Under the pieces are notes generated by a model, which was given only the letters and a program-made list of their open reading frames with translations, searched no databases and was not told the DNA's origin. Positions 7,163-50,821 of a stretch of DNA of 64,000 bases are shown in pieces. Made by a program: the position numbers and the translations under genes. Within the stretch, counting starts at the first letter, position 1. Every line of letters starts with the position of its first letter. The stretch lies in the sequence record MZ574431.2. One strand, written 5' to 3'.

Positions 7163-7497
7163 TGTCCAAGATCGTCCACTGGTACGGCATCAAACCCTGG
7201 ACAGGCCCCGAGGCGGACTATCGGATCGCCGACAATCTGCCGGCCGGCACCAAGGTCCTGACCGCGTGCATGCGGGAGGGCCGGCCCGTGCTCTATGTCG
7301 AGAAGGTCGTTGGCAAGGGCAATCCGGCCCAGGCCATGTACCAGAACCAAGTCGACGCTTTCTTCGTCGAGACCGGCAAGGAGTTCCTGGAGGTCCTGAC
7401 GCCGGGCGACCCGTTCAAATACGTCGCCACGATCCAGATCGAGCGACCCTCGGGGCTCTATTTCTACCATGTCTACGCAAGGGTCCTGGGTCTGTGA
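7162..7497 (+). CDS. hypothetical protein
   Basis: TGATG coupling. Confidence 0.7.
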   Translation: MSKIVHWYGIKPWTGPEADYRIADNLPAGTKVLTACMREGRPVLYVEKVVGKGNPAQAMYQNQVDAFFVETGKEFLEVLTPGDPFKYVATIQIERPSGLYFYHVYARVLGL

Positions 7498-7762
7498 AGT
7501 CCTCAACCGCCGAGATTACGGCGGTAAGATGCCCAAGGGCGCCAAGTCAGTAGACCGTAACACGCCCTACGGCAATCCCTTCCACATCTCGGCGACCATG
7601 AACCGAGACCAGTGCATCGACGCCTTCGAGGCCTGGGTGATGACCCAGCCTGATCTGATCGCCAGGGCGCGCCGAGAGCTTCGCGGCTACCATCTGGCGT
7701 GCTGGTGCGCGCCGCTGCGCTGCCACGCCGAGGTCTGGAAGAAATTATTGGTTACTTCGTGA
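7469..7762 (+). CDS. DUF4326 family protein
   Basis: DRNTPYGNPF...LRGYHLACWCAPLRCHAEV signature. Confidence 0.85.
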   Translation: MSTQGSWVCEVLNRRDYGGKMPKGAKSVDRNTPYGNPFHISATMNRDQCIDAFEAWVMTQPDLIARARRELRGYHLACWCAPLRCHAEVWKKLLVTS

Positions 7763-7806: not shown

Positions 7807-8334
7807 ATGCTTTTGCACACACCTGCCATCCAGGCAGCATGGGCGTTCGCTCAGCTAGCCCATGCCGGCCAGAAGTACGGCGACGACGATTACGACGTCC
7901 ACGTCCGGGAAGTGGCGCTGACGCTTCAGGATCATGGCTATAGCCAGGAAAGCTGGATCATCAAGGGCCTGCTCCACGACTGCTTCGAGGACAACAGCAA
8001 CGTCACGCTGGAGATTCTGGTTGCCGGCTTCGGTGCAGATGTCGCCGAAGGGGTTGACACCTGCTCGGGGTTTGGAGAAACGCGCCTGGAGCGCGTGACC
8101 ATGATCGCCGAGAAGATGCGCCAGCGGCCTCGGCACATTCCCGTCAAAGTCGCTGACCGGATCGTGAACCTGCGCGCGGCGGCGAAGAACAAGTCCGTGC
8201 GCCACGCGCTGCTCTATCTGGGCGAGGCGGCCGGGTTCGACGAAATCGTTCGAGATCACGTGGGTGACACCATGTGGCTCGACCTGCAAGACGCCTACGC
8301 CGCCTGCGAGCGCATGGTCGGAGAGCACCATTGA
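7807..8334 (+). CDS. RelA/SpoT-type HD hydrolase (small alarmone hydrolase/Mesh1-like)
   Basis: AHAGQKY...H...GLLHDCFED...FGADVA...VKVADRIVNLR follows the HD_4 motif order. Confidence 0.85.
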   Translation: MLLHTPAIQAAWAFAQLAHAGQKYGDDDYDVHVREVALTLQDHGYSQESWIIKGLLHDCFEDNSNVTLEILVAGFGADVAEGVDTCSGFGETRLERVTMIAEKMRQRPRHIPVKVADRIVNLRAAAKNKSVRHALLYLGEAAGFDEIVRDHVGDTMWLDLQDAYAACERMVGEHH

Positions 8335-14326: not shown

Positions 14327-15520
14327 ATGCTGATCCCTGACGATCTGCGCATCCTGCGTGCGGCTTTCGAGGCCCTCAACCGCGACATCCGCTTCGTGGG
14401 CGGCTGGGTTCGCGCTTACATGCTGGGCGAGGCGCCCAAGGACATCGACCTCTGCACCGACGCCAGCATCGAGGAAATGAAGGAGATCGCCGAAGCCTGC
14501 GACGTGGTGCTTGATCTCTACCCCACGGGCGAGGAGCATGGCACCATGACCTTCCGCCTCGACAGCGGGCTCTACGAAATCACCTGCCTGCGTCAGGAAA
14601 CCGCCCACGATGGCCGGCGCGCAGACTGCGTGTTCGGGCAGGACTGGGACGCCGATTTGGCCCGGCGTGATCTGACGATCAACGCCATGGCCATGGACTT
14701 CGACGGGCGCCTCTACGATCCCCACGGCGGCGCCGTGGACCTCAAGGCCGGCCGCGTGCGCTTTGTCGGTGATCCGGTTGATCGGATGCGCGAGGACTAT
14801 CTGCGCATCTTGCGCTGGCTGCGCTTCCACGCCCGTTACTCCAAGGGACCGCTGGATTTTGACGCCCGCAACGCCGCCGAGGACCTTCGAGATGGTCTGG
14901 GGCCGATCAAGGCAGTCCGAACCAAGATCGGCTACACCGTCTCTCGCGAGCGGGTCTGGGACGAGATGAAGAAGATCATCGCCGGCCCGCGCTCGGCCTA
15001 CATCCTCTTCCAGATGGTTCGCATGCGCCTGGACGAGCCGCTGGGCTTTGATGGGATCGTCATCGGCGACCGCTACAACGCCGTCGTGCGCGAAACCGCC
15101 GATCCGATCGTGAGGCTGGTGGCGTTGTTCGAGGATACCCGCGACATCGAAGCCCTGGCGACCGATTGGAAATGGAGCCGCGAGGAGCGGAGCCGCGCGA
15201 TCTTCCTGTCCAAGTGCCTCCTGGCCGAAGATGTCGACGTTCTCAGCCTCGTCCTCATGGGCGTGTGCGACAAGGACGCCGCCGAGGACATCTGCATCCT
15301 GCGGGAGGATGCCGACCTTTTGGCCTACGTCCGCCGCTGGACGCCGCCAGAGTTTCCGGTAAAGGGTCAGGACCTCCTAGATTTAGGCATGAAGCCTGGG
15401 CCGCAGATGGGCGTTCACCTTGCCAGCCTCCGCCGCCTTTTCGCCGATCATCGCGGGGGCGTCACCAAAGAACAACTGCTCGCCACCCTGCGCCTGGAGA
15501 TAGACCTGTGCCCGTCTTGA
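14327..15520 (+). CDS. cca: class II tRNA nucleotidyltransferase (CCA-adding enzyme / poly(A) polymerase family)
   Basis: FVGGWVRAYMLG..KDIDL, EITCLR.E..DGRRA, DLARRDLTINAM, EDYLRILR motifs. Confidence 0.92.
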   Translation: MLIPDDLRILRAAFEALNRDIRFVGGWVRAYMLGEAPKDIDLCTDASIEEMKEIAEACDVVLDLYPTGEEHGTMTFRLDSGLYEITCLRQETAHDGRRADCVFGQDWDADLARRDLTINAMAMDFDGRLYDPHGGAVDLKAGRVRFVGDPVDRMREDYLRILRWLRFHARYSKGPLDFDARNAAEDLRDGLGPIKAVRTKIGYTVSRERVWDEMKKIIAGPRSAYILFQMVRMRLDEPLGFDGIVIGDRYNAVVRETADPIVRLVALFEDTRDIEALATDWKWSREERSRAIFLSKCLLAEDVDVLSLVLMGVCDKDAAEDICILREDADLLAYVRRWTPPEFPVKGQDLLDLGMKPGPQMGVHLASLRRLFADHRGGVTKEQLLATLRLEIDLCPS

Positions 15521-19356: not shown

Positions 19357-19986
19357 ATGTACCCCAAGCACCACCTCATTCTCCACGGGATCGAAGACGC
19401 CGGCATGCAAGGCATGGTCCGCGCCATTCTCGGCCCGGACTACTCCTCGATCATCGTCTCCGAGAACATGATCCACCAGGAGTGGAACAACCCCAAGGCC
19501 GTGGCTGTCCTTCTCCAGCCTGTCTATGACGACGAAAACGACCGCCTGGGCGTGATCGTTGGCAAGCGCGCCATCGCGCCGCAGATCGGCGAGTGGGCGA
19601 TCCCCGGCGGTTTCGTGCAGAACTTCGGCCGATCGATCGAAGAAGAAGCCGTCACCGAGTTCGAGCAGGAGATGGGCATCGCCGGCCTCACCGCCGACAC
19701 CGTGCGCATGTGGCACAGCTACCCCACGCCCAACGGCCGCATCCTGTTCTTCTGTGTCAACGGCCAGACCCTGAAGGCCCGCGAGATCAAGGAGGTCCTG
19801 GGCGCAGGCAAGGGCGACGGCGAGATGAGCGACTTCAAGGTCGCCTATGAGCCGTTCCAACTGGCCTTCCCGTTCCACACCATCGTCATGGAGAAGTTCT
19901 TCCGGTCCTTCCAGGCCGGCGCCAAGGAATTCCCCATGCCCGGCTATGGTCTGATCGCCTCTCGGGGCCATCTGCCGCAACGCTAG
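19357..19986 (+). CDS. Nudix hydrolase (degenerate box)
   Basis: WAIPGGFVQNFGRSIEEEAVTEFEQEMGI; C-terminal LAFPFH. Confidence 0.8.
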   Translation: MYPKHHLILHGIEDAGMQGMVRAILGPDYSSIIVSENMIHQEWNNPKAVAVLLQPVYDDENDRLGVIVGKRAIAPQIGEWAIPGGFVQNFGRSIEEEAVTEFEQEMGIAGLTADTVRMWHSYPTPNGRILFFCVNGQTLKAREIKEVLGAGKGDGEMSDFKVAYEPFQLAFPFHTIVMEKFFRSFQAGAKEFPMPGYGLIASRGHLPQR

Positions 19987-27834: not shown

Positions 27835-28469
27835 TCAAGGCCCTGGCCTTCCTCTGCGCCCACGGCGAGTTTGTCCGCCTTGAGGTCAACGACCATCGCA
27901 CCTGCTATGAGTCGCCCGAGCGGAACCTTCGCATGCACTCGCTCCTCCCCGAGGAGTGGTGCAACCAGATCGAGCGCGTCCTGATCCAGGCGGCCGTCGA
28001 GAACGAATCGCCCTTGACCACGGTCAAGGTCTGGACCAACCAGCAGCGCAACGTTGACCGCCAACTGACGGTCGGCGCGTCCTTGCCCATGACCTTGGCC
28101 ATGGCGCTCGATCGCCTGCGGGTCTCCGAGGCGAATGTCATGCCCCTGCCGGAGTTGGAGGAGGACGCCTCCGCGCTCTTGGAGCGCTGCATGGCCTATC
28201 TCTTCTCCAACGCCCTCTCCTGGTATCTGGACGTCCAGCCCTTCTGCCCCGAGGACGCCATGCCTCTCGACGCCCTGATCGAGTGCAACATGGCCGCGCC
28301 AGAGGACTGGATCGGCGAGGAGCCGTGGACGCGTGACTACACCGGTCCGTTCCACGCCCTGATCATCTATCCCGACAACCCTGTGGGAAGCTGGTGCTTC
28401 TACGGCCCGTCCGTGCCGGACCTGCTGATCAAGGGCTATCAGACGCTGAAGGAGTATCGCGCCCAATGA
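27831..28469 (+). CDS. hypothetical protein
   Basis: GTGA/ATGA overlaps. Confidence 0.75.
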   Translation: MIKALAFLCAHGEFVRLEVNDHRTCYESPERNLRMHSLLPEEWCNQIERVLIQAAVENESPLTTVKVWTNQQRNVDRQLTVGASLPMTLAMALDRLRVSEANVMPLPELEEDASALLERCMAYLFSNALSWYLDVQPFCPEDAMPLDALIECNMAAPEDWIGEEPWTRDYTGPFHALIIYPDNPVGSWCFYGPSVPDLLIKGYQTLKEYRAQ

Positions 28470-29308
28470 CCGAGACCAAGGACGCCCTGGGCGACCGGAT
28501 GAAGGCCTACGAGAAGGTCGAGACGGGGCGGCGCTTCATGCCCGGTCTGCCGGTGATCGTGCGCCTGGATGGTCACGGCTTCTCGCGCTTCACCAAGGGC
28601 CTTCAAAAACCCTTCGACATGCGCATGGTCGCCGCCATGGCCGAGACCACCAAGGCCTTGGTCGAGAAGACCCATGCACGCCTGGGCTACACCCAGTCCG
28701 ACGAGATCACCCTGGTCTTCATGCCCAAGGATGACATCGAGCAGTATTTCTTCGCCGGCAAGGTCTTCAAGATGAAGTCCGTGCTGGCCGGCCTGTGCTC
28801 GACCCTCTTCTATCGCAACTTCGAGCGCGAGTGGCTCGCCAGAACCGGGGACGCCGCCCACGACCTTACGGCCCTGACCCGCTACCTGGAGCGCAATCCC
28901 CACTTCGATGCGCGCGCCTTCCAGGTGCCCGTCGACTACGAGGCCGCCAACGCCGTCCTCTGGCGCGTCAAAGACGCCGAGCGCAACGCCGTGCAGATGG
29001 CGGCCCAGTCGCTCTACTCGCAAAAGCAGCTTCACAAGCTGTCGACCGAGACCCTGCGCCGCAAGATCGCCGAGGGTGGCCTGGACTTCGACGCCTATCC
29101 TCGCGCCATCCGCAGCGGCAGCTTCTTCCAGTCGGTCACAGAGCTTCGGCCGATCCCGCCCGAGGCGCTGGAGCGGATGAAGGAGAAAGACCGGCCGGCG
29201 GACGGTATGATGCGACGCGCCTCGGTCCAGGAAGTGGCCGCCGAAGGTCCGGTCGCCTACCGAACGGTCGCCGATCTCCTGGGCATCGTGCCGGTGATGG
29301 ACGTCTGA
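28466..29308 (+). CDS. thg1: tRNA(His) guanylyltransferase Thg1-like protein (3'-5' polymerase)
   Basis: RMKAYE...IVRLDGHGFSRFT...KPFD...GYTQSDEITL...FDARAFQVP...WRVKDAERN signature. Confidence 0.92.
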   Translation: MTETKDALGDRMKAYEKVETGRRFMPGLPVIVRLDGHGFSRFTKGLQKPFDMRMVAAMAETTKALVEKTHARLGYTQSDEITLVFMPKDDIEQYFFAGKVFKMKSVLAGLCSTLFYRNFEREWLARTGDAAHDLTALTRYLERNPHFDARAFQVPVDYEAANAVLWRVKDAERNAVQMAAQSLYSQKQLHKLSTETLRRKIAEGGLDFDAYPRAIRSGSFFQSVTELRPIPPEALERMKEKDRPADGMMRRASVQEVAAEGPVAYRTVADLLGIVPVMDV

Positions 29309-29649
29309 TGTACCTGCTCAATGACGTCAAGGACCAGAAGGGCAGCACGACTGTCCTTCTCGTCAAGGAGAAGACCTTCGATCACGTCGTGGGTTACCAT
29401 GTCTCGGCGGACGGGACGGTGTCGGAGCAGACCTACGGCGCGCGCCGCGTCAATTGGATCGCCTTCTTTGACACCTTCGAGGAGGTCAAGGCTGCTCGCA
29501 AGGCGGCGATGGAGGCCTTCAAAGCCCACGACAAGGCCATGGAGAAGGCCCGCAAGGTTCTCCGTGACGCCACCAATGATCGCAAGTCCGCCTGGACGAA
29601 CGCCATCCTGGCCTCGCCCGGCGCCCAGCCCGTGAAGGCCGGCCTATGA
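29308..29649 (+). CDS. hypothetical protein
   Basis: TGATG coupling. Confidence 0.7.
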   Translation: MYLLNDVKDQKGSTTVLLVKEKTFDHVVGYHVSADGTVSEQTYGARRVNWIAFFDTFEEVKAARKAAMEAFKAHDKAMEKARKVLRDATNDRKSAWTNAILASPGAQPVKAGL

Positions 29650-30215
29650 GTAAGACCCTCGTCCAGGTGATGGAGCGCAAGGACGGCGTCATCCGCTATT
29701 TCGTCTGCGTCGACGGCAAGAGCGCGCCGCGTGTGCCGCACGACGACGTCGAAAAAGCCCTGCGCGAAGCCAAGCGTCTGGCCCGTAAGAGCCGCAAGAC
29801 CGCGCGCATCTTCATGCAGATCGGCGCGGTCTTTCCGACCCAGCGCGGTATCCTGGTCGCCAACTTCGGTCAGGGCCAGTGGTACACCGAGCAGAACGAC
29901 GAGGATCGCCGTGTCTGCGCCCAGGCCATCCTGGAGAAGCTGGCCCCTAAGATCAGGGCCAAGCTGGGGTCGGCGCCCTGGGACGTGTTCGACGAAGAAG
30001 GCTATCCGCTCCAACGTCCGCCCAAGACCGATCTGCCGCCCAAGGGCTCGCTTCACTACTGGGCGCCCGCCGACAAGATCAACGAGGTCTATGCGGCGCT
30101 GTGGGGCAACCAGAAGGCCGTTCTCCGCGTCGTGGCCATGCACTTTGGCTGGACGATTGGCGAGGCCTATGTCGCCACCGAAGACTGGTTTCGCTCGACG
30201 AGAAACTATAACTGA
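29646..30215 (+). CDS. hypothetical protein
   Basis: ATGA overlap. Confidence 0.75.
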   Translation: MSKTLVQVMERKDGVIRYFVCVDGKSAPRVPHDDVEKALREAKRLARKSRKTARIFMQIGAVFPTQRGILVANFGQGQWYTEQNDEDRRVCAQAILEKLAPKIRAKLGSAPWDVFDEEGYPLQRPPKTDLPPKGSLHYWAPADKINEVYAALWGNQKAVLRVVAMHFGWTIGEAYVATEDWFRSTRNYN

Positions 30216-30221
30216 TCATTC

Positions 30222-30263
30222 TGCAAGATAACGGTTGACAGCATAGCGTGGGCCGCCTACCCA
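30222..30263 (+). promoter_or_regulatory. conserved phage promoter heading the NAD salvage operon
   Basis: TGCAAGATAACGG-TTGACA-17-TACCCA; TGACA...TGTCA flanking repeat. Confidence 0.75.
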
Positions 30264-30294
30264 TGTCACGACCACTTTCACCAAGGGAGTTCCC

Positions 30295-30888
30295 GTGACC
30301 GACAAGACCCTGCCCCCGCCGCCCCACGTCGCCGAAGATGACCAGTTCGAGGAACTGGCGCGGGTGTGGGTGCGCCGCGATGCGGCTCCCACCGACGGCG
30401 AGAGCCAGATCAGCCTGGGCGTCACGCTCAGCGATCGCGCCAGCTTCCACGAAGTCATGGGCCTGCTGAGCGCGGTCGCCACCGGCTACATCATCCAGCA
30501 GCCCGAAGTCGCCGCCGCCTCGGGCGAGATCAAGGACTACCTGATCGCCCAGGGCACCCAGCAACTGCTGGAGCAGACCGTCGAGGCCGCCAGCCCGCTG
30601 CGGCCCCAGCATCTCCCCGCGCCGGACGAACTGCTCTACGAGCCCGGTTCGGTCAACATCGCCAGCCTCTGGATCGATCCTTCGCAGGAAGGCACCCACA
30701 CCATCTTCGCCGGCGAGCCCCAGAAGCTTGGGGCCAAGACGCTCGGCGGCCTCCTGGCGACGATGCTGCTCGAAGCCGGGCGCAACGCCGACGGCACCTT
30801 CAACGTCGACTTCATCGAGGGCCTGCAAACCTCGATCGCCACGACGACCAAGGCGTATCTGGCCCAAGAGGGTCAACCCACGCAATGA
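30295..30888 (+). CDS. hypothetical protein with two related halves (DUF5076-like)
   Basis: LPPPPHVAED...ELARVWV versus LPAPDELLYE...NIASLWI; GGGAG SD. Family name recalled, not searched. Confidence 0.6.
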   Translation: MTDKTLPPPPHVAEDDQFEELARVWVRRDAAPTDGESQISLGVTLSDRASFHEVMGLLSAVATGYIIQQPEVAAASGEIKDYLIAQGTQQLLEQTVEAASPLRPQHLPAPDELLYEPGSVNIASLWIDPSQEGTHTIFAGEPQKLGAKTLGGLLATMLLEAGRNADGTFNVDFIEGLQTSIATTTKAYLAQEGQPTQ

Positions 30889-31571
30889 TGCGCAAGGCTC
30901 TACTGTTCTCGTCCGCCCTGGCCGCCATCCTGGCCTTGGCCACCAGCACCGAAGCCGGCGAGATCGCCGGCTCGGTCACCCTGACCTCCGCCTACATCTC
31001 ACGGGGCACCGACCAGAACGTCCTCAACGGCGCGGCCGTCCAGGGCTTCGTGACCTACGCCAAGGGTCCATTCTACGTCAGCGCCTTCGCCTCGACCATG
31101 AACTATGGCGAGGGCACGACCAAGGAACTCGACTTCTTCGGCGGCGTCCGCAAGAGCTACGGTCCTTGGACGGTCGACGTCGGTTTCGCCAACATCAACT
31201 ATCCCGACAACCACACGCCGCTGAACTTCGTCGAGTACGATCTGAAGATCGATCGCGCGGTCGGCAAGGGCAACGTCGGCGTCTGGCTCGGCTACACCGA
31301 CGCCTACTTCAACACCTATGGCCAGGGCGTCTGGACCGAGGCCCATGTCAGCTACCCGATCACCAGCACGGTGTCGATCAGCGGCGCGGTCGCCAACCAG
31401 GACCTGCCCAACAACTTCGACTACCGGACCTGGAACGTCGGCGTCACCAAGGCCTTCGCCCATGGCGTCTCGGCCGATCTGCGCTATAGCGACACCGATC
31501 GCCACGACCTGGACCCGCGCTGGAACACCTACGGCGCGCGGACCTCGCTGACCCTGTCCAAGAGCTTCTGA
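30885..31571 (+). CDS. TorF/TIGR02001-family outer-membrane beta-barrel (putative porin)
   Basis: Sec signal (MMRKALLFSSALAAILALATSTEA), GSVTLTSAYISRG.DQ, ELDFFGG, YSDTD, C-terminal Phe. Confidence 0.85.
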   Translation: MMRKALLFSSALAAILALATSTEAGEIAGSVTLTSAYISRGTDQNVLNGAAVQGFVTYAKGPFYVSAFASTMNYGEGTTKELDFFGGVRKSYGPWTVDVGFANINYPDNHTPLNFVEYDLKIDRAVGKGNVGVWLGYTDAYFNTYGQGVWTEAHVSYPITSTVSISGAVANQDLPNNFDYRTWNVGVTKAFAHGVSADLRYSDTDRHDLDPRWNTYGARTSLTLSKSF

Positions 31572-31582
31572 AGGGGGAGCCG

Positions 31583-32218
31583 ATGAGCCTGCTTGAAATC
31601 CTCGCCACCGCCGTGACGGTCGCCTGCGTCCTACTGGCCGTCAAGCGTTCGACGTGGCAGTACCCGGTCGGGATCGTCGGTACGATCCTGTTCTTCTTCG
31701 TCTTCCAAGGCGCCAAGCTCTACGCCAGCGCCATGCTCCAGGTGTTCTTCACCCTCGTCCAGGTCTACGGCTGGTGGTACTGGACGCGCGGCGATCGAGG
31801 CAAGTCGCCGCCGATCACCTCCTGGAGCCCGGCCTTCACCGGGGCGATCGTGGTTGCCGGCCTCGTGGTGGGCGTGGTGCTGAGCATGATTCTCAACGCC
31901 TTCACCGACGCCAAGGTGGCGCTCTGGGACTCGGCGATCTTTGGCCTGTCCATGGCCGCTCAGTTCCTGCTCGACCGCAAGAAGCTGGAGAACTGGACCG
32001 TCTGGGGTCTGGTCAACATCATCTCGGTCTTCGTCTACTGGCAGCAAGGCCTGACCGTCGCGGCGATCCTCTATGCCGGCCTGTTCGTCAACGCCTTCTG
32101 GGGCCACTATGAGTGGGCCAAGGCCAAGCGCGCCCAGAAGATCGTCTGGGACGCCGAGGCCCAGAAGTACCCGGCCGCGCCCATCCATGAACCGAAGCCT
32201 GGGGACCTGCTGACTTGA
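31583..32218 (+). CDS. pnuC: nicotinamide riboside transporter PnuC
   Basis: YGWWYW, WDS...S..AQFLL.RKKLENW..W motifs; multi-TM. Confidence 0.92.
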   Translation: MSLLEILATAVTVACVLLAVKRSTWQYPVGIVGTILFFFVFQGAKLYASAMLQVFFTLVQVYGWWYWTRGDRGKSPPITSWSPAFTGAIVVAGLVVGVVLSMILNAFTDAKVALWDSAIFGLSMAAQFLLDRKKLENWTVWGLVNIISVFVYWQQGLTVAAILYAGLFVNAFWGHYEWAKAKRAQKIVWDAEAQKYPAAPIHEPKPGDLLT

Positions 32219-33258
32219 ACCACGCCGTCGAAGTCCCCGCCCATCCCTTCGAAGCCAAGCCCGAGCGCGGCTTTGTCCTGGGCAAGTTCATGCCGCCGAC
32301 CGAGGGCCATCGGTTCCTCTGCGAGTTCGCCAGAGAGTACGTGCAGAAGCTGACCATCCTGGTCTGCTCGATGCCCGATGAGCCCATCGACGGCTTCCTG
32401 CGCTTCCAGTGGATGCGCGAGATGTTCCCGGACTGCAATGTCCAGTGGTGTCAGGAAATCCTGCCCCAGGAACCCGTCGGCGAGGACCCGGAGTTCTGGT
32501 CGACCTGGGCCGGCGTCATCCAGAAGTACGGCAGCCGCTACGGCGAGCCTTATCGCCCCGATGTCGTCTTCGCCTCGGAGACCTATGGTCACAAGCTGGC
32601 CGCCAGCGTCGGCGCGCGGTTCGTGCCCTGCGACATCAGTCGCACCGCGCGCGACATCTCCGCGACCCGCATCCGCGCCCAGCCCCTGGCCAACTGGTCC
32701 TACATCCCCAACGTCGTGCGCCCGCACTTCGTCAAGCGGGTGACCATGTTCGGCCCCGAAAGCAGCGGCAAGTCGACCCTGGCGACCGCGCTCGGCAAGG
32801 TCTTCGACACCATCGTCGTGCCCGAGTATGGTCGCACCTATACCGAGCAGTTCGGAGCCGACGTCGGCGCCGAGGACCTGATCCGCATCGTCCAGGGTCA
32901 CCGCGCCAGCGTGGCGGCGGCCAAGCGCCAAGCCAACCGCATCATGTTCGAGGACACCGACCCGATCATGAGCGCGGTCTGGGCCGACATGCTGGGCGTC
33001 GCGCGCGACCCCTGGTTCGACAGCTTTGACGACAAGGCCGACCTTTATCTGCTGTGCGGCGTCGACATCCCCTGGGAAGACGACGGGACGCGCTACTTCC
33101 CCAGGCAGTCCGACCGCGAGCGCTTCTATGATCTCTGCAAGGCGGAACTCGAACGGCGCGGCTGCCGCTACATCGAGATCAGCGGGTCCATGCTGGAGCG
33201 CCGGGTCCAGGCGATCGCGGCAGTGACCAAAACCTTTGGCATCGAGGTGGCGATTTGA
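32215..33258 (+). CDS. nadR: NadR-type NMN adenylyltransferase / ribosylnicotinamide kinase
   Basis: GKFMPPTEGH (T/HxGH), ISATRIR, Walker A GPESSGKS, PEYGR, DIPWEDDGTR. Confidence 0.92.
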   Translation: MNHAVEVPAHPFEAKPERGFVLGKFMPPTEGHRFLCEFAREYVQKLTILVCSMPDEPIDGFLRFQWMREMFPDCNVQWCQEILPQEPVGEDPEFWSTWAGVIQKYGSRYGEPYRPDVVFASETYGHKLAASVGARFVPCDISRTARDISATRIRAQPLANWSYIPNVVRPHFVKRVTMFGPESSGKSTLATALGKVFDTIVVPEYGRTYTEQFGADVGAEDLIRIVQGHRASVAAAKRQANRIMFEDTDPIMSAVWADMLGVARDPWFDSFDDKADLYLLCGVDIPWEDDGTRYFPRQSDRERFYDLCKAELERRGCRYIEISGSMLERRVQAIAAVTKTFGIEVAI

Positions 33259-33641
33259 GTACCTTCACCTATCTGGGCATCCCCTACACCTCCAAGAACC
33301 CCGACCCGGTCGCGGCCGAAGCCGAACGCGCCGCGCGCATGGTCGAGTTCTGGAAGGGCTGCGCGTTCCTGATCGAGCGGGGCGACAATGTCGTCTCGCC
33401 CATGACCCTGGAGCCGGCCCTGACGGTCGTGCCCGACATCCCCTACGATTGGCCGTTCTGGCAGCACTATTCTCGCCGGATGCTGGCCACCTGCACACGT
33501 CTGGTGGTGATGACGCTGCCGGGCTGGGAAGTCTCCTCGGGCATTGCCGGTGAGATCGAGGAAGCCGAACGCCTGGGCCTGGAGATCGAGTATCTGGCGC
33601 CCGAAGCTGTGGACGCCTGGGTCGCCGGGCGGCAGGCTTAG
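33255..33641 (+). CDS. DUF1937-like protein (nucleoside deoxyribosyltransferase-like fold)
   Basis: YLGIPYT...VVSP...LVVMTLPGWEVSSGIAGEIEEA. Confidence 0.8.
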   Translation: MSTFTYLGIPYTSKNPDPVAAEAERAARMVEFWKGCAFLIERGDNVVSPMTLEPALTVVPDIPYDWPFWQHYSRRMLATCTRLVVMTLPGWEVSSGIAGEIEEAERLGLEIEYLAPEAVDAWVAGRQA

Positions 33642-33648
33642 TTTCCCC

Positions 33649-33696
33649 TTGCGCCGTGTCGCCGATGGTGTACTGATGACGCCAACAGTGACACGG
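33649..33696 (+). promoter_or_regulatory. putative promoter with anti-SD arm
   Basis: TTGCGC-16-TACTGA; CCGTGTC/GACACGG covers the GGGG SD region; lacks the upstream motif. Confidence 0.45.
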
Positions 33697-33704
33697 GGTC
33701 GTAG

Positions 33705-33950
33705 ATGCAAGATTCGGTCAAGGACGATCCGTTCGGCGACGACCACGGCTTCCTCATGTATGTGGACGCCCACTGCCGCACGCCGCGCTGCCTCTTCCAC
33801 ATCGACCATATCGAGCGCTTCGCCAAGCTGGCCGGCGGGGAGATCAATCGCGCGGACTGGCGCGGGGAATGGTTTTCGATGGACCAGGAGTTCTGCGAGC
33901 CGTTCCTGAAGCGCGCCTTCGCGCGCCTGTCGGTAGCGGAGCCGGCCTGA
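33705..33950 (+). CDS. hypothetical protein
   Basis: Packed. Confidence 0.7.
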   Translation: MQDSVKDDPFGDDHGFLMYVDAHCRTPRCLFHIDHIERFAKLAGGEINRADWRGEWFSMDQEFCEPFLKRAFARLSVAEPA

Positions 33951-34381
33951 TGGCGTTCGGGACCCTTGAGGGCGAGCGCTGTTGGCGGAACGGATGCGAC
34001 GGCGTGATCGAGGCGCCGGCGGCCGAAAACTGCACCTGCTTCCAACGCCCGCCCTGCAACGCCTGCGTCACCCCGCGAGAGGTCTGTCTGACCTGCGGGT
34101 GGATCGCCGCCGAGGAGGGCGAGCCGCTCAATGGCTTCCTGGTCCACTACAACGAGGACCGCACGGTCCTCACCGACTGCAAGCCCAGGCCGCTGGACCC
34201 GCGCAAGATCGATTGGCGCTCGCGGTCTCACTCCAATGCCTCCATGATCAAGGAGGGTGTCTTCCCGCCCGGCCTCTCGCGAGAGGACGTCGAAAAAGCC
34301 GTCGCGGGAACCTTCGGCGGCCGGTTTGTCCATTTCGATCCCGTGGCCGGCGCCTTCAAGTACATCGCCTACACCGATTAA
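33950..34381 (+). CDS. Cys-rich hypothetical protein
   Basis: C..GC...CTCF.RPPCNAC...C..CGW. Confidence 0.75.
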   Translation: MAFGTLEGERCWRNGCDGVIEAPAAENCTCFQRPPCNACVTPREVCLTCGWIAAEEGEPLNGFLVHYNEDRTVLTDCKPRPLDPRKIDWRSRSHSNASMIKEGVFPPGLSREDVEKAVAGTFGGRFVHFDPVAGAFKYIAYTD

Positions 34382-34388
34382 GAGACCC

Positions 34389-34589
34389 ATGACCCACCGT
34401 GACGCCACGCCCGCCGACTTCGAGGGCAAGAAGATCATCCTGGCCGAAGTCGACGCCATCAACGTCTGGCGGCTGCACTTCGACGACGGGACTAACGTCA
34501 CCGTCGAACTCACCTATTTTGGTCCGCTGCTAGGTTACGGCATGGCGGTATGCGAGTGCGATCAACCCGTCCCGGAGCTAGTGCCTTGA
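34389..34589 (+). CDS. hypothetical protein
   Basis: AGAG SD; packed. Confidence 0.65.
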   Translation: MTHRDATPADFEGKKIILAEVDAINVWRLHFDDGTNVTVELTYFGPLLGYGMAVCECDQPVPELVP

Positions 34590-50784: not shown

Positions 50785-50821
50785 GAATCCTGTTGACAAC
50801 CTAGGGTCATGCGCCTATATG
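50780..50821 (+). promoter_or_regulatory. conserved phage promoter
   Basis: GGTGAGAATCCTG-TTGACA-17-TATATG. Confidence 0.75.

Follow-up and report, generated by a model that had tools for sequence, protein, structure and literature searches.

Results

Synteny of a porin gene with pnuC and a nadR-like gene

Caulobacter jumbo phages of the genus Bertelyvirus carry, side by side, genes for a putative outer membrane porin, a PnuC-family nicotinamide riboside (NR) transporter and a NadR-like enzyme without the N-terminal helix-turn-helix (HTH) domain, and we are confident that the three make up one functional unit. This trio lies in a block at positions 30234-33641 of a 64,000-nucleotide stretch of record MZ574431.2 (the window), in which a promoter motif stands ahead of five + strand genes that are closely coupled. 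The pairing of PnuC and HTH-less NadR is already known from phages as the NAD+-restoring system NARP3; the new element is the linkage of the porin. The core of the block is probably NARP3 plus a phage-specific outer membrane channel, that is, a three-gene, two-membrane module for uptake and conversion of NAD precursors. The coordinates of the core genes are:

30885..31571, + strand: porin, putative TorF/Gcw_chp-family outer membrane beta-barrel, 228 aa (TIGR02001, PF09694)
31583..32218, + strand: PnuC-family nicotinamide riboside transporter (inner membrane), 211 aa (PF04973, TIGR01528)
32215..33258, + strand: NadR-like nicotinamide mononucleotide (NMN) adenylyltransferase and ribosylnicotinamide kinase, without HTH, 347 aa (TIGR01526, NF005988)

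The window is DNA of Caulobacter jumbo phage C1, and the 3.4-kb block matches phages C1, C2 and J4 (Bertelyvirus, Dolichocephalovirinae) at 100% identity; genomes of the C1 group measure ∼311 kb. Phages CcrSC and CcrBL9 are 84-86% identical to the block over its last 77%. Adding 185915 to a window position gives the position in MZ574429.2, a record of the C1 group. Two of the five genes are named in the GenBank record ('PnuC-like ribosyl nicotinamide transporter' and 'ribosylnicotinamide kinase') and the other three are entered as 'hypothetical protein'; in the CcrBL9 record the barrel gene is labelled 'putative exported protein'.

The evidence for a functional unit comes mainly from gene order. 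PnuC followed the porin in 13 of 13 contexts in which downstream DNA was visible, a count that takes in three Bertelyvirus types. The order porin, PnuC, NadR was found in the C1 group, CcrSC, CcrBL9 and the Bertelyvirus-like contig L025, and also on the metagenomic contigs L004, L005/L006, L007, L010, L012/L013, L022, L023 and L085; L086 shows porin and PnuC. The L086 contig stops within or just past pnuC, which leaves NadR outside the visible DNA, and one further contig, which stops at the porin, was left out of the 13 informative contexts. The porin clade spans 36-85% identity, falling to 40% in the synteny contexts, and homologues at 50-84% identity come nearly all from metagenome assemblies. 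The contexts range in GC content from 50 to 64% (50-62% for the metagenomic contigs), and the distance between porin and pnuC varies from -1 to 1186 nt, with 0-3 small unrelated open reading frames (ORFs), a histidine phosphatase or a 314-aa ORF in between. Across the module, porin and NadR are conserved to much the same degree (52-85% and 55-88% identity, respectively).

A search of 1.84 billion representatives returned 844 TorF-family members (clusters at 50% identity), among which the phage porin clade is a single cluster, followed by intermediates at 36-41% identity. Both of the intermediates examined (L085 and L086) have the porin-PnuC arrangement, and NadR is also present on L085. At least two of the contigs are phage, since L005 has a match to a tail-fibre PHROG and L007 encodes homing endonucleases. 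An IMG/VR scan for further porin loci yielded CcrSC and CcrBL9 alone, and a scan of JGI metagenomes gave five distant fragments only, which were dropped because their contexts were too GC-rich and too short to read.

Bacterial loci and the origin of the block

No close relative of the porin was found in 185,579 species, each represented by one genome. A scan with the NadR alignment yielded 58 bacterial loci (Caulobacter, Maricaulaceae, Hyphomonadaceae, Sphingomonas, Actinomadura and others), and pnuC lies directly upstream of nadR in ∼47 of them. A TorF-family ORF was present within ∼8 kb of NadR in none of the 58, as judged with a porin hidden Markov model that does detect distant TorF proteins (1e-10 to 1e-17). 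NadR-like proteins occurred in 734 phage records, 11 of which, all Bertelyvirus, also contained the porin. The proposal in an earlier, sequence-based annotation of this DNA (the original prediction) that the porin belongs with PnuC and NadR is borne out by the two counts, 13 of 13 for the phage contexts and 0 of 58 for the bacterial loci.

These loci also bear on whether the block could be a host operon that was captured as such, with no phage-specific adaptation. pnuC-nadR pairs are common in Caulobacterales and their relatives, the closest bacterial NadR proteins, from Caulobacter metagenome-assembled genomes (MAGs), reach 53-62% identity, and by sequence comparison the pnuC-nadR pair looks Caulobacterales-derived. 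Against this stand the lack of the porin from all 58 loci and of any close porin relative in the species genomes, and the phage-type promoter with which the block opens, and we regard plain capture as very improbable. Since the porin is absent at the bacterial loci and the synteny follows the phage lineage, the block is not an unmodified host operon. From its distribution, the porin is a phage-lineage addition.

Two further features of the NadR set were observed. On a 6.6-kb contig that is binned to an uncultured Caulobacter MAG and may be bacterial or viral (L026, 329-2729), the order is ClpP-PnuC-NadR, with no porin, and this NadR is the closest of the bacterial set to the phage NadR (62% identity). 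In Hyphomonadaceae and Sphingomonas, the protein after pnuC matches the kinase half of NadR only (query residues ∼173-340), and in Caulobacter, Maricaulaceae and Actinomadura it is the full-length form with both adenylyltransferase and kinase; the half- and full-length loci are L029-L057 and others.

The barrel protein

The porin matched TIGR02001, 'TorF family putative porin', at 1.9e-30 (106.2 bits against a cut-off of 47.15; residues 6-228), and PF09694 (Gcw_chp) at 4.7e-18 (66.5 bits against 24), and is thus above the curated cut-offs of the TorF/Gcw_chp family over its full length. The only other porin profile matched in Pfam and NCBIfam was Porin_4, below threshold, and PHROGs contains no family for the protein. 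The N-terminus has a basic n-region, a hydrophobic core and then TEA|GE, with a predicted signal peptide of ∼24 residues. The C-terminus is SKSF, and its terminal Phe is invariant across 18 homologues. An AlphaFold model made with these 18 homologues in the alignment (mean predicted local distance difference test score, pLDDT, 87.5) has a helix at residues 2-20 followed by 12 strands. The predicted structure therefore combines the hallmarks of an outer membrane barrel, namely a signal peptide, an even number of strands and a C-terminal aromatic residue, in agreement with the signal-peptide beta-barrel ending in Phe that had been proposed from the sequence.

When the model was compared with the PDB using Foldseek, only outer membrane barrels were matched. 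The top match was the monomeric porin OmpG, and the most compact superposition was on the 12-strand KdgM (4FQE; target-normalised TM score 0.79, root mean square deviation 3.7). Small substrate-specific porins include the Tsx nucleoside channel, and the porin of the window, with a predicted 12-strand barrel of ∼205 mature residues, resembles the small monomeric specific porins KdgM and NanC. The likeness to KdgM is one of fold, as no Pfam match to that family was obtained at E<=0.01; the window protein differs from KdgM and NanC in sequence membership, and the substrates differ as well. Conserved columns fall on 30 of 65 positions of the inferred lumen face and on 9 of 67 lipid-facing positions (Fisher p=5e-5), the faces having been assigned by hydrophobic alternation and not from coordinates. 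On the inferred lumen face, the residues carry a net negative charge and many are aromatic. NR is a cation. This pattern is as expected of a channel adapted to its substrate, and we think it more likely than not that NAD precursors pass through the porin.

The transporter and the NadR-like enzyme

PnuC matched PF04973 at 1.1e-47, TIGR01528 with 98 bits (cut-off 42.45) and PHROG 1880, and aligns to PnuC of N. mucosa (4QTN). The NadR-like protein matched TIGR01526 (4.2e-71), PHROG 3462 (1.9e-64) and positions 63-404 of the 411 in NF005988; since the latter profile is matched only from position 63, the N-terminal HTH is absent. Its kinase domain (PF13521, AAA_28) covers residues 175-329 (3.9e-29). 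PDB matches included NadR of H. influenzae (1LW7, 1e-35), 8X7F and 9X6F, with the catalytic motifs aligned. In the alignment to 1LW7, the nucleotidyltransferase motifs (GKFMPPTEGH and ISATRIR) and the kinase motifs (GPESSGKST, EDTD and WEDDGTR) are all intact. The profile scans thus confirm the gene identities in the original prediction, including the TIGR02001 barrel and the two-domain, HTH-less NadR.

Comparison with known systems

NARP3 is formed by the phage proteins Bas30_87, which is PnuC-like, and Bas30_86, which is NadR-like and lacks the HTH (Sci Adv, August 2026; PMC13464706). Bas30_87 imports NR, Bas30_86 converts it to NAD+, and the pair, for which crystal structures were solved, restores NAD+ depleted by Sir2-HerA (PMC13464706). 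The paper describes a module of two genes, confined for the most part to phages of Enterobacteriaceae, and 'porin', 'outer membrane' and 'Caulobacter' each occur 0 times in its text (PMC13464706). The pair in the window agrees with NARP3 in three respects: PnuC stands with an HTH-less NadR that has NMN adenylyltransferase and ribosylnicotinamide kinase domains, the genes are adjacent and co-oriented, and they are encoded by a lytic phage. In addition, the window NadR matched 9X6F/9X6H, chains named nicotinamide-nucleotide adenylyltransferase, at 1.7e-29. NR import and NAD+ rescue were demonstrated for Bas30_86/87 only, and the window pair is known from its genes. The differences are a TorF-family porin as a constant third partner, the Caulobacter host, and the order pnuC then nadR. 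The original prediction had placed the block on a route distinct from NARP1/2, which stands; the PnuC-NadR part of that route has since appeared in the literature, with experiments, as NARP3 (PMC13464706).

In function, the nearest analogue is a bacterial route. In Haemophilus influenzae, precursors are taken up through the OmpP2 porin, the periplasmic enzymes NadN and e(P4), PnuC and NadR, and OmpP2 is the entry point for NAD and NMN, ahead of PnuC and NadR. The two-membrane logic is the same as that suggested here. However, OmpP2 is a 16-strand trimeric porin of the general type, unrelated to TorF, the Haemophilus genes are dispersed in the chromosome, and the nucleotidase and phosphatase steps that take place in the Haemophilus periplasm are absent from the window module. 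One candidate for such a step, the histidine phosphatase of L005/L006, was rejected, as its sequence opens directly with the catalytic RHG motif, leaving no room for a signal peptide. In the other contigs, the small ORFs that separate porin from pnuC are mutually unrelated, and signal peptides are lacking there too.

Phage-encoded porins are known from lambdoid prophages. The statement in the original prediction that no phage porin had been described in this role therefore holds for the role and not for phage porins as such. A literature search found no paper that links a porin, PnuC and phage, and a survey of NAD genes in jumbo phages mentions pnuC with no outer membrane protein in the clusters (PMC11662467).

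The NAD island and the metabolic alternative

Like the NAD clusters of jumbo phages and the KVP40-type NadV/NatV salvage system (NARP2), the metagenomic relatives of the window carry genes for NAD synthesis. Around the trio lie genes for a NadM-type adenylyltransferase-Nudix protein, a PncB-like phosphoribosyltransferase, a PncA-like isochorismatase and NadE, on the phage-like contigs L004, L005/L006, L007, L010, L012/L013, L022, L023 and L085. By gene content, this island would combine a Preiss-Handler route with the riboside route. For the metagenomic PncB-like protein, the nearest relatives are encoded by Agrobacterium phage Atu_ph07 and Sinorhizobium phage Phosso. No match to it was found in Bertelyvirus genomes, and no match to the porin was found in Atu_ph07. 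In the 64-kb window, the matches to NAD-salvage families are PnuC and NadR only, plus one Nudix gene of unknown substrate. Macro-domain genes were also seen near the island in L005 and L010.

The island raises the possibility that the module is a general metabolic booster, made of auxiliary metabolic genes, and not a counter-defence system; the porin would have the same transport role, and the extra NAD+ would feed NAD-consuming steps of the phage while it goes through a long infection in a host short of nutrients. The trio's place within a larger set (NadM-Nudix, PncB-like, PncA, NadE) has the look of wholesale provisioning, and the jumbo-phage survey treats NAD synthesis clusters as general metabolism (PMC11662467). 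On the other hand, NARP3 neutralises Sir2-HerA (PMC13464706), and the nicotinamide that NADase defences set free would be recycled by PncA and PncB as well. We consider the booster account a possible but less probable one, and the two roles are compatible, not exclusive.

Transcription unit and neighbouring genes

The remaining features of the block are:

30234..30259, + strand: promoter-like element GTTGACA-N-CCTA, of a recurrent phage motif family, with GCAAGATAACG 5' of it
30295..30888, + strand: g1, orphan, 197 aa, no signal peptide, outside the conserved core
33255..33641, + strand: DUF1937, nucleoside 2-deoxyribosyltransferase-like, 128 aa (PF09152)

The five genes had been predicted to be coupled, and this can be read directly from their junctions. 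The stop of g1 overlaps the start of the porin by 4 nt (ATGA), porin and PnuC are separated by an 11-nt gap that contains GGGGGAG, and 4-nt overlaps join PnuC to the NadR-like gene (at 32215-18) and the latter to DUF1937. Upstream, GTTGAC-N16-CCTA is located at 30234-30259, inside the 79-nt gap 5' of g1. The pattern GTTGAC-N15-18-CCTA has eight matches in the window, where 0.13 are expected, all eight on the + strand (12886, 20202, 22581, 24918, 26569, 30234, 50792 and 55989); seven are within listed intergenic gaps of at least 40 nt, and the eighth (55989) is beyond the stretch listed. The recurrent element often has the form GCAAGAAAAC(T/G)GTTGACA-N16-17-CCTA, and less strict copies are present in further gaps, such as those 5' of 7807 and 10857. 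It is reasonable to take the 30234 element as the candidate promoter of the block, and the single promoter of the original prediction is likewise reasonable given the excess of this motif family. No terminator was found 3' of DUF1937, and the next strict motif is only at 50792, so that the transcription unit probably extends past 33641. An Rfam scan of 29500-34500 at E<=1 detected no riboswitch or other RNA element.

The first and last genes appear to lie outside the module, and neither showed any sign of a role in NAD metabolism in the comparisons of distribution and homology. For g1, the sole Pfam match was a sub-threshold one to DUF5076 (18 bits, cut-off 25), searches of PHROGs and PDB sequences gave nothing significant, the only homologue found was the same gene of a sister phage, and the AlphaFold model was unusable (pLDDT 44.9). 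It shares 28-29% identity with the genes at the corresponding position in CcrBL9 and L025, in which porin and NadR are 73-88% identical. By these comparisons g1 is a fast-evolving orphan, restricted to Bertelyvirus and not in the conserved core. DUF1937 matched PF09152 at 5.1e-13 (50.1 bits, above the gathering cut-off of 23) and PHROG 355. The protein is 55% identical to gp255 of phiCbK, and phages of the phiCbK type, which carry it, lack porin, pnuC and nadR; it occurs in none of the metagenomic porin-PnuC-NadR modules. The original prediction had counted DUF1937 as part of the module; we rejected it as a pathway member on this distribution, and it is probably a translationally coupled neighbour. 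A picture of clean insertion relative to phiCbK was also rejected, since the flanking genes are not homologous.

Other features were noted in passing. An ORF at 7469-7762 of the window (+ strand, likeliest start 7529) has a clear DUF4326 domain (PF14216, 8.9e-21) and sits in a 299-nt stretch that is unannotated in the phage C1 GenBank record. The window also encodes an HD_4-domain protein (7807-8334), a CCA-adding enzyme (14327-15520), the Nudix hydrolase of unknown substrate (19357-19986), a Thg1-like tRNA-His guanylyltransferase (28330-29172) and, near 57.7 kb on the - strand, two tRNA-Arg genes. On L025, a 114-kb Bertelyvirus-like metagenomic contig, a CsgG-family (curli-secretion-channel-like) protein is encoded at 840-1784, ∼8 kb upstream of the porin, adding a further envelope protein to those of this group of phages.

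Discussion

The gene identities, their coupling, the intact catalytic motifs, the predicted barrel and the phage-specific synteny allow a mechanism to be proposed, in which the outer membrane location of the porin, its channel activity, its substrate and the pay-off of the module would be as follows. The phage promoter at 30234 would drive g1, porin, pnuC, nadR and downstream genes. The porin precursor would be exported via Sec, cleaved after about residue 24, and inserted in the outer membrane by the BAM machinery through its C-terminal Phe signal. There it may form a small monomeric channel of 12 strands, with a conserved, net-acidic and aromatic-rich lumen, that passes NR, and possibly NMN or nicotinamide, by diffusion over the Caulobacter outer membrane. 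PnuC would then move the riboside over the inner membrane, and the kinase and adenylyltransferase domains of the NadR-like enzyme would convert it to NMN and on to NAD+, trapping the precursor. The expected benefit is that NAD+ is sustained during the long infection by a jumbo phage. The pay-off could be the countering of NAD-depleting defences, as with NARP3 of coliphage Bas30, or the supply of phage needs in an oligotrophic host; a counter-defence role here would be an extrapolation from NARP3.

The host offers a rationale for the third gene. At 255 Da, NR is well within the size range of the general porins of enterobacteria. In C. crescentus, neither OmpF/C-type general porins nor specific porins are reported to be encoded, and the bacterium relies on 67 TonB-dependent receptors (PMC4659666). 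If Caulobacter lacks such porins, the riboside would meet a barrier at the outer membrane, and a phage that uses an external precursor would need a passive channel of its own; this would explain why NARP3 is joined by a porin here but stands alone in coliphages. The broader proposal is that, in phages of Caulobacter-like hosts, NARP3 has a substrate-adapted outer membrane channel as its obligate third part, by which they tap extracellular precursors that the host's outer membrane would otherwise keep out, and we put the chances of this at about even.

Several observations weigh against the two-membrane reading of the trio. No periplasmic phosphatase or nucleotidase that could process NMN or NAD is present with the module; together with the undefined 3' end, this makes 'complete', the term of the original prediction, too strong. 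A general role in NAD provisioning fits the data as well as counter-defence does, the more so given the NAD island of the metagenomic relatives. The scores of the NadR-like protein are below the NCBIfam equivalog cut-offs (239.8 against 341.15 bits, and 136.5 against 201), indicating a divergent member, for which reason we refer to it as NadR-like and not as NadR. A generic sigma-70 scan did not call the 30234 element, which is a caveat on the putative promoter. For the porin, the lumen statistic depends on the alternation-based assignment of strand faces, and some 12-strand barrels are not solute channels; FapF and autotransporter domains also appear among its Foldseek matches. A literature search found no characterised TorF/Gcw_chp member, the family being described only as 'putative porin'. 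The flanking genes of a distant bacterial TorF-family protein (L014, 7001-8144; 31% identity) are glnA and one for a P-II (GlnK-like) protein, so that specificity for NAD precursors is not a property of the family and the substrate cannot be read from membership in it; this neighbourhood hints that other TorF clades partner other small-solute uptake systems. Lastly, Mantel tests were significant only through the Bertelyvirus clade (p 0.05-0.65 for the other seven loci), and as the identity matrices of porin, PnuC and NadR are not clearly congruent outside that clade, selection for linkage is not certain. The non-congruent divergence can be read as recombination with the linkage kept, or as noise.

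The points on the barrel might also be taken to mean that its role has nothing to do with NAD (superinfection exclusion, receptor masking or passage of another solute, for instance), and that its place beside pnuC reflects shared ancestry. The family's lack of a known function and the nitrogen-assimilation neighbours of the bacterial relative leave room for this, and other phage-encoded barrels occur in viromes. Nevertheless, the adjacency has been kept in every informative context, across the full GC range, despite turnover of the intervening genes and non-congruent phylogenies, and in Bertelyvirus the rest of the NAD island has been lost, yet the porin stays with PnuC and NadR. We therefore consider an unrelated role improbable, and prefer the reading of the porin as the outer membrane partner of PnuC and the NadR-like enzyme.

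If the porin is a channel for NR or NMN, the permeability of the host envelope shapes the NAD-reconstitution systems of phages, and where the host has no general porins, the two genes of NARP3 would not suffice and an outer membrane partner would be needed. Surveys of phage counter-defence modules that rely on a two-gene signature miss such accessory envelope components. The module would also be the first viral nutrient-uptake system across both membranes, and would provide one small gene as a genetic handle with which Caulobacter-type outer membranes could be made permeable to a defined metabolite. For the TorF/Gcw_chp family, with its 844 clusters, this would be a first function, as a channel for pyridine nucleosides or nucleotides.

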